A stretch of 64,000 bases of DNA from Bugula neritina. Its lineage: Eukaryota > Animalia > Bryozoa. The notes under the pieces are model-generated. The model was given only the letters and a program-made list of their open reading frames with translations. It was not told the origin of the DNA and searched no databases. The DNA lies in assembly GCA_964035545.1 (NCBI GenBank), contig OZ037769.1, positions 13,980,633 to 14,044,632 of the forward strand, written 5' to 3'. Positions within the stretch are counted from its first letter, which is position 1. Each line of letters begins with the position of its first letter. The position numbers and the translations under genes are program-made. Positions 38,201-40,825 of this stretch are shown here, piece by piece.

Positions 38201-40825
38201 GCTTACTAAGGAATACAGGTATAATGTGTTCATTTCTAACTTAATTTGAATTAGAAAGTCATTAAAACTACCTAATCAGCTTCTTATTATTACTTCTTTA
38301 GTTTACTTGTGCAGTGGTTTATTAAACTTCAACTGTATATATATATATATATATATATATATATATATATATATATATATATATATATATATATATATAT
38401 ATATATATATATATATATATATATATATATATATATATATATATATATATATATATAGTGTATGCTGATTGTCAATCTAGTTGGAGTTCCAGCAAAGTAA
38501 AGTGCTCGATATCACAGGTGACAGAGCTAATATAATGTAGTGTGTTCAGATTGTTAATGATACATATATATTTTTTTATTTAAAAAATCTCACACGACTA
38601 TATAGTTTCGTACAGTAAACTGCACTCGTCAGGTGTTAGACTAAAAATAAATAAAATCTGTGAAGCATACCGACTATTCAAATTTTTACATAAAGAAAAT
38701 TATCATGCTAAACACAACGTAAAACGAAATGCAAACATAGTAGTGGATTTGGTGTTATCTATTAATTAATTAAATTGCTCTTTTTCTAAAGGATTAGAAA
38801 AGTAATTAGTGAAGCATACCGACTAAAGGATTAGTCGGTATGCTTCACAGATTTTATTTATTTTTAGTCTAACACCTGACGAGTGCAGTTTACTGTACGA
38901 AACTATATAGTCGTGTGAGATTTTTTAAATAAAAAAATATATATGTATCATTAACAATCTGAACACACTACATTATATATATATATATATATATATATAT
39001 ATATATATATATATATATATATATATATATATATATATATATACACAACAATCATGATTAAAAGCCCAAAGCTTTGTATTATGATTGTTACGCCATTTAT
39101 TTTTAGTGGTGGAAACAAGCGGAAGCTAAGCACAGCCATCGCCCTGATTGGTGACTCACCCATTATATTCCTGGACGAACCCACCACAGGGATGGACCCA
39201 GTAGCCAGGCGAATGCTTTGGAAAACTTTGAATAGAAACAGAGAAAGTGGCAAAACCTTGATACTTACATCTCATAGGTAACAGCTGTCTGTATGTACTT
39301 ACTAAACTCATGTTTACTTACTGAACTCATATACTGTTAATAGTAAAATGGTCACTAAAAAGCTGTAAAAGCGGTAAAAACTCTTGAAACTATTGTAGCG
39401 TGCAATATTATGATAATAAATTATAATATTATTTAATAACTTATTTATGAGTTGTCTTCTTATGTAATTTAAAAGATCGAAATTTAAATTAACTAAATAG
39501 AATATAACATAACATCATATTTATTGAGGCTAGCTGCTTGTTTTGTGCATCTTGACGTATAAGCAAAATGATTTTTTTTTTAAAAAAAGATCTCATAATT
39601 TTTGTGTGAACTTAAATGTAGCATAATTGTAGATTATATAGAATGTTAATTTAGCTTACAATGCTATTAATTGCTTTATTTTAATAGAAAACTAATTATT
39701 GTTCTTCAATTCTCTTTGTAAGCAAACACAGTTTCAAGTAATTTTTTAAAAGAAATAATAAATAAGTGTCATCTGGCAATAATAGCAGCGATATTTATCT
39801 ATTAATGTTATTTCTATTCATTCATATTACATAATTTAAAAATATAGCAATATTTTTAAACGTAAAAAATAAAATCGATATGTCAAATATTATGTAAAAA
39901 AGCTTGAAAAAATATTTTTTAAACTGCAGCTTTGAATTAATTTTCTAAAACAGTATGGAAGAGTGTGAAGCTCTGTGCACTAGAATGGCTATCATGGTGA
40001 ACGGTAAGTACAGATGTCTTGGCAGCACACAGCACTTGAAGAGCAAGTTTGGAGCTGGTTACACACTAATAGCAAGAGTTAGCTACCCTGTGGATGGCTC
40101 TTTGCCAGATATTCAGCCAGTACAAGACTTTGTTGCTCAAAACTTCCCAGATTCTACACTGAAGGATGTTCACCAAAACTCTGTGCAGGTATAAATGATG
40201 GCATGCGTTTTAAAATTTGAAAACTATTAAAAAGCTTCTTATTGGTCAACCTATTGACCCAGAAACAAAGAGCATCTGTTAGTAATCCAATACATAATCA
40301 AAGAGCTTTGTGCAAATTATAATGAAAGCCACTTTTACAAAAATACATGAAATCAAAATGACTGTACTGTTGAAATAAATAACTGTCAGTGAGAAGAATA
40401 AATAAATTCGTTGACAAAAATAAAGGCTTGGCAGTCTGCCAAAAGAATCTGAACAAATTTTATTTCGATTTTTGAACTTGTAACAATATTTTATTATTAT
40501 GCCTTTTTTGTAGTATGATATTCCCCGAGAGCAGATTTCTTGGGCGGCCATATTTGAAAAGATGGAGTCAAATAAAGTGTTGCTCAACATTGAAGACTAC
40601 TCCGTGAGTCAGACGACCTTGGAGCAAGTGTTCTTGAACTTTGCCAGAATCCAAGTTCCGCCAGATGAGAGCAAACCCGGATGTGGAAGGATGATGAGAA
40701 GAGCATGCTGTACTTTATGTATGCCTGAATATGTTGTAGAGTCTGATCATGTGACTTCTGTCAAACGAGAAGGAGTTAAAATAAAAAGGAGAATAAAGAA
40801 AAAAATTAAAATAAGAAATAAATAA
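23282..40825 (+). CDS. ABCA-subfamily full transporter (ABCA3-like), copy 1, about 28 coding exons
   Basis: N-terminal [13 protein letters not shown] typical of ABCA. NBD1: [33 protein letters not shown]2: [30 protein letters not shown]-terminal [12 protein letters not shown]. Exons could be joined in frame from 23282 to the TAA at 40825. Confidence 0.96.
23702..23890 (+). mobile_element. Old, degenerate SINE copy (also present at about 46430-46620 in ABCA copy 2)
   Basis: GACCTAGTAAA...GGTCAATAGTTCAA...CTATCAGGGTTTTTCACAGA at the same position of the first coding intron in both paralogues. Confidence 0.65.
24325..24560 (+). repeat. Degenerate 33-bp minisatellite overlapping the exon 3 acceptor of ABCA copy 1
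   Basis: Units like GACTTTGAGAGCCAACTATTACTTGAG run into TTTGTAG|AACCAAGTATAATTT. Confidence 0.8.
25738..25905. repeat. (CACACG)n/(CA)n microsatellite
   Basis: Directly visible. Confidence 0.95.
26528..26734 (+). mobile_element. tRNA-derived SINE copy
   Basis: Full-length match; the equivalent intron in copy 2 (49677-49762) lacks it. Confidence 0.88.
28545..28742 (-). mobile_element. tRNA-derived SINE copy
   Basis: Match to the family in reverse orientation. Confidence 0.8.
34116..34200. repeat. 12-bp tandem repeat (AAAACTCACAAT) x7
   Basis: Directly visible. Confidence 0.93.
35513..35725 (+). mobile_element. tRNA-derived SINE copy
   Basis: Full-length match; a copy sits in the equivalent intron of copy 2 at about 59858. 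Confidence 0.85.
36225..36530. mobile_element. MITE-like foldback element
   Basis: Inverted ends AGATGAAAATGGCACAGGTAAAAAT / ATTTTCACTTGTGCCATTTTTATCT, internal ATGGCACA subrepeats, central AAACCCT-like repeats; absent from copy 2. Confidence 0.7.
38589..38639 (-). ncRNA. Second, identical minimal hammerhead ribozyme on the opposite strand
   Basis: Exact reverse complement of 38869-38919 within the left arm of the inverted repeat. Confidence 0.86.
38869..38919 (+). ncRNA. Minimal type I hammerhead ribozyme (Penelope-like-element type)
   Basis: Stem I ACAC/GUGU; core CUGACGA (38876-38882); stem II GUGCAG-UUUA-CUGUAC; GAAA (38899-38902); short stem III on palindrome ACUAUAUAGU; GUC triplet with predicted cleavage after C38912. 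Confidence 0.88.

Follow-up and report, generated by a model that had tools for sequence, protein, structure and literature searches.

What are two hammerhead ribozyme motifs doing on opposite strands of a nearly perfect inverted repeat inside an intron of an ABCA gene? The question is raised by a 64,000-nucleotide stretch of the Bugula neritina genome (GenBank assembly GCA_964035545.1, contig OZ037769.1, positions 13,980,633 to 14,044,632, forward strand), which in its whole length is referred to here as the window. An earlier note on this DNA had read the arrangement as a self-cleavage element with a built-in cis inhibitor, and as a possible device for separating the expression of two ABCA paralogues. 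We consider it very probable that the inverted repeat arose instead when a Hydra-clade Penelope-like retrotransposon (PLE) inserted once into a (TA)n microsatellite of the ABCA intron. The hammerhead motif serves the element, and in this intron it is very probably a passenger. For insertions of Hydra-clade PLEs, the hammerheads, the (TA)n target, the truncation, the inversion and the one-sided tail have already been published; what we document is which family this is, how many copies it has and how often the architecture recurs, together with covarying ribozyme stems and a duplex that dominates energetically.

The repeat finder placed two arms of 150 nt at 38530-38679 and 38829-38978, with a spacing of 149 nt and a complementarity of 99% (149/150). 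The sole mismatch, 38677/38831, lies at the inner edge and leaves 147 nt perfect, so that the perfect 147-bp inverted repeat of the earlier note stands. Each arm belongs to a truncated copy of the same element (Table 1). The left copy corresponds to positions 2234-2568 of the full-length unit at 97% identity by BLAST, carries a terminal "tail" of about 70 nt at 38459-38529 that the right copy is without, and has an arm that reaches 120 nt deeper into the 3' untranslated region (UTR) than the right arm does. Between the two copies, the junction at 38799-38831 is made up of about 5-9 nt of filler, a 22-nt fold-back (38804-38825) and a 6-nt loop. The fold-back is the complement of the 22 nt with which the right copy begins, and the same hairpin appears in the computed fold; a 12-nt direct repeat occurs at 38789 and 38822. 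Two substitutions are common to both arms and absent from 36 other copies, so that the arms of this pair either came from one template or were homogenised afterwards. Together, the (TA)n tract and the insertion account for about 710 of the 888 nt of the intron.

The hammerhead motifs themselves are well defined. The pattern CTGANGA..GAAA..GTC has exactly two matches in the window, at 38876-38912 (+) and 38596-38632 (-), where shuffles predict 0.13. With the host exons on the plus strand, these are a full core on the sense strand of ABCA and an antisense copy upstream, as the earlier note had described. The type I catalytic core is complete, with CUGACGA at 38876-38882, GAAA at 38899-38902 and GUC ending at 38912; cleavage of the plus-strand copy is predicted between 38912 and 38913. 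Helix I has 4 bp, plus 2 bp past an A/G mismatch, and helix II has 6-7 bp, closed by a loop of 4 nt. The 10-nt palindrome ACUAUAUAGU provides helix III, either as 3 bp around a 4-nt loop or, in a dimer, as a palindrome of 10 bp. The stem check, together with the identity of the arm as a PLE 3' end, bears out the earlier description of minimal type I hammerheads of the PLE kind with a tiny palindromic stem III.

A search with Rfam models, proposed in the same note, gave a divided answer. On an 86-nt slice, Hammerhead_1 (RF00163) matched 38870-38918 (+) over the full length of the model (1-45) with 26.3 bits and E 5e-05, at a gathering score of 34 bits, so that the full-length match stood and the score fell short. 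No Rfam hammerhead was returned by the whole-window search at the gathering threshold or by a search of a 900-nt slice with E up to 10; in both, the RF00163 match was dropped by the search filters. PLE hammerheads with a minimal helix III are reported to need dedicated descriptors (Cervera and de la Pena, 2014; PMC4209133).

Stronger support for the motif comes from comparison within the genome. A hammerhead lies at the equivalent place in five PLE families whose reverse transcriptases (RTs) are only 45-50% identical. The core is invariant across the five, whereas helices I and II change in sequence yet stay paired. Over 12 pattern-selected sequences from these families, 94.6% of cells were paired and 14 of 18 pairs showed compensatory changes; none of 500 shuffles matched the observed stem pairing, and slid registers were far lower too. 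This covariation across five families indicates that the motif is a real feature of the element and is selected in active elements. In dead copies of the family in the window, the ribozyme was no better conserved than its surroundings, with 18 minor-variant cells in its 53 columns compared with 55 in the 150 columns of the entire arm, and some of these copies carry mutations in the hammerhead core. As to what the motif does for the element, monomeric PLE hammerheads gave no detectable cleavage in vitro and dimers had low activity (PMC4209133), and hammerhead cleavage was dispensable for insertion in vitro (PMC11167929). The true role of PLE hammerheads is unsettled in the literature; at the level of the element it is presumably the processing of tandem transcripts as a dimer. 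A fifth variant of the hammerhead, with helix II GGGG/CCCC and the triplet GUC, was seen adjoining (TA)n at L046:55-89 (-) and L031:7360-7400, and the latter copy has a mutated GAAA box.

The element to which the arms belong could be followed through the whole genome. The 150-nt arm matches no fewer than 42 places in the 216 Mb, at 96-100% identity, and it forms the terminal part of the 3' UTR in a 2570-nt unit that has one open reading frame (ORF) of about 700 codons. In the full unit, the hammerhead lies about 240 nt past the stop codon and is followed by (TA)n, and every sampled end of the family adjoins (TA)n. Public data contain over 2700 relatives of the ORF, bivalve and bryozoan proteins among them. 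The ORF models as a telomerase-like RT with a C-terminal GIY-YIG nuclease. For the AlphaFold model of the ORF (predicted local distance difference test, pLDDT, 84.5), the top seven Foldseek matches in the PDB were TERT (E 8e-09 to 5e-07), followed by other RTs, and the ORF contains YRDDG and other RT motifs. The C-terminal 149 aa were also modelled alone (pLDDT 84.1). With a structural aligner used as a second look, the seven best matches of this domain were all GIY-YIG nucleases, including I-TevI (Z 9.0; root-mean-square deviation 2.3 A over 89 of 92 residues), T4 EndoII (Z 8.1), the UvrC N-terminal domain (Z 6.2-6.5) and PD-T4-3 (Z 5.5), and the first unrelated fold followed at Z 2.9. Foldseek gave no significant match for the C-terminal domain (best E 0.29), and when the C-terminus was compared by BLASTP with a GIY-YIG ORF from another family that Pfam does recognise, only 34 residues matched, and weakly. 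A relative at 49% identity matches Pfam GIY-YIG.

The clade is indicated by individual residues and by the build of the unit. Published hallmarks of the Hydra clade are RWK, DKT in place of DKG, a CxCX5C linker, the lack of CCHH, CxxC and CxH on either side of the catalytic E and N, a length below 3 kb, (TA)n targets and a hammerhead (Craig, Yushenova, Rodriguez, and Arkhipova, 2021; PMC8557442), and all of them were found in the present ORF or unit. The residues are R46, W47 and K48; D124, K125 and T126; and C567, C569 and C575 in the linker. Around the catalytic E and N, the ORF has C667, C670, E673, N687, C696 and H698 (CxxC..E..N..CxH), and CCHH is absent. Across 22 homologues, the RWK, DKT, linker and CxxC/CxH residues show little or no variation. 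Searching the whole genome with an RT fragment returned at least 150 scored matches (381 candidates), with several families at 45-50% identity; many of the matches have open frames of 600-740 aa, and many Hydra-type PLEs of the genome are apparently intact. The only precomputed labels on relatives of the ORF were HTH_animal (PF26215) and DUF8422, an annotation gap for Hydra-clade PLEs.

The arrangement in the window recurs at other sites of the family. We mapped the full unit on 29 loci of the family, representing about 24 distinct insertion sites. At 11 of these, the window included, a minus copy meets a plus copy within 40 nt. In ten of the 11 pairs, both copies are 5'-truncated, both reach the 3' end of the element, and the 3' ends face outward into (TA)n; in the eleventh (C8:1449048), the minus piece is an internal fragment. 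Breakpoints and arm lengths vary from site to site. Copies end at unit position 2497 or 2570, and in most pairs only one side bears the tail of about 70 nt, which in the window is the left side. As a hairpin, this tail is not significant taken alone (z-score -1.38).

The same head-to-head layout was found in other PLE families of the genome (L044 and L064) and around a homologous element of Watersipora subatra. At L044:431-554 and L064:907-1008, the head-to-head hammerheads are 36 and 23 nt apart and the arms are extremely truncated; L044 has a third copy in tandem 370 nt downstream. In W. subatra (L066:1033-4876; OY755163.1), a homologue at 53% identity has, downstream of its ORF, first a hammerhead (4670-4706) and next (TA)n, and an inverted hammerhead at 1136-1100 adjoins another (TA)n. 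At L031:2161-9970 (G000:C9:2728160-2738250) lies a tandem array of at least three units of about 2.59 kb with (TA)n between them. In each unit of the array, a 353-nt 3' end in inverted orientation is joined to a copy of the same PLE that is 5'-truncated, and the whole has the look of a head-to-head insertion that later underwent tandem amplification. Beside it, L031:844-1859 holds a 453-nt inverted repeat, 99% complementary and with arms 110 nt apart, whose ORFs on both strands match Pfam GIY-YIG; this is a head-to-head pair of a different PLE family. Published traits of PLEs include frequent 5' truncation, partial tandems, an adjacent inverted 5'-truncated copy and a tail at one end (PMC8557442).

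How might such a pair arise? Unlike R2 and L1, a Poseidon PLE protein acts in vitro on both strands of the DNA, which it cuts and extends (PMC11167929). At the present locus, the GIY-YIG nuclease of the element would cut both strands of the TA tract, and each exposed 3' OH would prime reverse transcription from the 3' end of the element RNA. Both complementary DNAs (cDNAs) would stop early, one after about 340 nt and the other after about 150 nt, and their truncated 5' ends would be joined in the middle of the insertion by the short fold-back and the filler. The outcome would be two 3' ends facing outward, head to head. Such a two-strand priming route would explain both the outward 3' ends and the central joint of truncated 5' ends. 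The fold-back and filler suggest template switching or hairpin formation as cDNA synthesis ended.

We turn to what the arrangement may mean for the host transcript. A transcript of the full repeat folds to a duplex of about 150 bp at -277 kcal/mol, and forcing the hammerhead pairs costs about 78 kcal/mol relative to this duplex. In transcript prefixes that end just past the ribozyme, the best fold has none of its pairs; when the right copy is folded alone, 10 of the 13 hammerhead pairs form. There is one sense hammerhead in this intron, so no dimer is possible in cis. The earlier proposal that the upstream arm would trap the ribozyme in a long duplex is thus borne out by the cost of the ribozyme fold, and the cis-inhibitor picture, as far as computed folds can tell, is physically correct and a side effect of the insertion architecture.

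Could the host have made use of this? The claim would be that the element was exapted, either as a ribozyme restrained by its antisense arm or as a source of double-stranded RNA for ADAR or Dicer, and that it tunes one ABCA paralogue. A perfect intronic duplex of 150 bp is a plausible substrate for enzymes that act on double-stranded RNA. The hammerhead is intact and lies in the sense direction of the pre-mRNA, where the earlier-transcribed antisense arm would lock it away. We nevertheless hold exaptation to be very improbable. In this family the layout is what insertion yields by default. The arms show 0 differences in 147 nt and are of the same young age as the family, and the ribozyme fold is disfavoured by the margin given above. 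That only one paralogue has the insertion counts in favour of exaptation; that the arrangement is not conserved between the paralogues counts against it. Published PLE hammerheads, moreover, showed no detectable cleavage as monomers and little as dimers (PMC4209133).

RNA evidence does not favour exaptation either. The sequence-bearing runs available were contigs, most with a guessed RNA label, and contigs cannot show RNA ends. Those over 38462-38978 cover the PLE family, and after 38798 they exit the sequence of the window into the full-length element. In these contig-only runs of mostly guessed RNA status, no RNA contig covers 38804-38839, the junction stretch unique to this copy. That a sense hammerhead locked in a 150-bp hairpin has been co-opted, to be freed by unwinding or editing or with the hairpin being diced, finds no support here and strikes us as highly unlikely; if it were true, this ABCA copy would owe to the insertion an output that is reduced or made conditional, compared with that of its tandem paralogue. 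Neither the idea of a designed self-cleavage element with a built-in inhibitor nor that of a device that separates the paralogues is supported. The layout is a routine outcome of insertion that recurs at 11 of about 24 sites, in other families and in another species, and the PLE literature describes it; the paralogues do not share it, dead copies lack extra ribozyme conservation, and the junction is uncovered in the RNA contigs.

A second possibility is a non-autonomous element, namely a foldback DNA transposon or one of the type of miniature inverted-repeat transposable elements (MITEs), with terminal inverted repeats of 150 bp, or else an animal retrozyme. A short, non-coding insertion with long and near-perfect terminal inverted repeats has the appearance of such an element. 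Its arms, however, align collinearly with the 3' UTR of an element that encodes an RT, and the left one includes 120 nt more of this UTR than the right one. Each paired site has its own arm lengths and breakpoints, and there is therefore no fixed transposing unit. Retrozymes, as far as the accounts consulted describe them, are direct and not inverted tandem repeats, of a non-coding unit that has a hammerhead and can yield a circular RNA; an animal non-LTR retrozyme (lacking long terminal repeats) was rejected because the motifs lie on opposite strands and a coding PLE has a UTR collinear with the arms. We therefore give this origin hardly any weight. The least credible explanation is an assembly artefact, a falsely duplicated inverted arm: complex PLE structures do disturb assemblies, chiefly those from short reads (PMC8557442), and the arms are perfectly identical, but the contigs of this assembly are 10-35 Mb long, the arms differ in length and tail and meet at a specific fold-back junction, and the architecture recurs at ten other sites and in the assembly of another species.

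Several points nonetheless weigh against reading the locus as a Hydra-clade PLE insertion without a role for the host. The pair in the window is known from the assembled sequence. The hammerhead lies below the RF00163 gathering threshold, and the sequences used for covariation were chosen by a pattern that itself demands 3 bp in helices I and II, which introduces an ascertainment bias. A Pfam search of the ORF and 22 homologues gave no RT or GIY-YIG match, and PDB sequence-profile searches of the whole ORF and of its C-terminal domain gave nothing, so the RT call rests on predicted structure and motifs. Assignment to the Hydra clade was likewise made by motifs, anatomy and predicted structure. 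One shared template per pair was considered as a rule and rejected: in ten pairs, partner arms are about as different from each other as non-partners, and likeness between partners stands out only in the window pair and in one pair with a 56-nt overlap. Finally, that the insertion has no host function is something we infer.

The host gene frames the insertion clearly. The exons on either side of the intron (Table 1) carry parts of an ABCA nucleotide-binding domain, and a Pfam R1_ABCA1 domain (ABCA1-type R1) lies downstream on the plus strand. A second ABCA copy in the window has the equivalent exon pair around a homologous intron of 343 nt (62014-62356), in which there is no element. The earlier statement that only one of the two paralogues has the element therefore holds. 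Elsewhere in the window, 17627-17699 (-) matches the Rfam tRNA model with 31.4 bits (cut-off 29), the only match in the window at an Rfam gathering threshold.

Table 1. Features of the ABCA intron and its inverted PLE copies, in positions of the window.
Feature	Position	Strand	Basis
ABCA exon, first part of nucleotide-binding domain (Walker A region)	37918-38218	+	Pfam ABC_tran, E 1.7e-11
Host intron, 888 nt, donor GT at 38219	38219-39106	+	Donor and acceptor read from sequence
Left (TA)n microsatellite, half of target site	38336-38457		Sequence
Left PLE copy, last ~340 nt of element, 5'-truncated within 3' UTR	38459-38798	-	BLAST to full-length unit
Hammerhead motif of left copy, core 38632 down to 38596	38589-38639	-	Pattern and stem check
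Central junction, where truncated 5' ends of both copies meet	38799-38831		Repeat finder, sequence, fold
Right PLE copy, 150-nt 5'-truncated 3' end, tail-less end adjoining (TA)n	38829-38978	+	Unit positions 2351-2497
Hammerhead motif, sense to ABCA pre-mRNA, core 38876-38912	38868-38920	+	Pattern, stem check, Rfam RF00163 below threshold
Right (TA)n microsatellite, other half of target site	38975-39043		Sequence
Next ABCA exon, SGGNKRKLS signature and Walker B	39107-39277	+	Pfam ABC_tran and AAA_21

Set beside known systems, the present family is closest in build to the published Hydra-clade PLEs (PMC8557442). Both have a short single ORF with RT followed by GIY-YIG; both show RWK, DKT, CxCX5C, no CCHH, insertion at (TA)n, a hammerhead, 5' truncation and partial tandems; and in both an adjacent inverted, truncated copy occurs, with a tail at one end. 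No tested feature was different, the tail of about 70 nt in the present family standing against 30-40 nt quoted for PLEs generally. The hammerheads described from PLE terminal repeats (PMC4209133) have the same core (CUGANGA / GAAA / UH), the same long helix II (6-7 bp), short helix I and tiny palindromic helix III implying a dimer, and the same location within the terminal repeat of the element. Where that work proposes a dimer, the window has one sense copy per transcript, paired to its own antisense, and a dimer is impossible in cis.

As in LINE-1 twin priming and in the in vitro reactions of the Poseidon PLE (PMC11167929), both target strands would have primed cDNA here, giving two truncated copies in opposite orientation that are joined internally, as judged from anatomy alone. 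LINE-1 twin priming, in contrast, yields an inversion within one copy, whereas the insertion in the window has two separate outward 3' ends. Intronic hammerheads of amniotes (Rfam HH9 and HH10) likewise point in the sense direction within introns of genes that encode proteins. These are single-copy and conserved across species, while the hammerhead in the window belongs to a young copy of a transposon, which the paralogue lacks, and is hidden in a duplex.

The paired hammerheads in this inverted repeat are thus best understood as the footprint of a PLE insertion and not as a host device, and the value of the finding is mainly for annotation, as similar paired-hammerhead finds become quickly recognisable. 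The locus also offers a clean genomic example of the two-strand cut and extension that has been published in vitro for a PLE protein. Beyond the locus, it points to an abundant RT family that current Pfam models and PDB sequence profiles miss and that was found by structure prediction.

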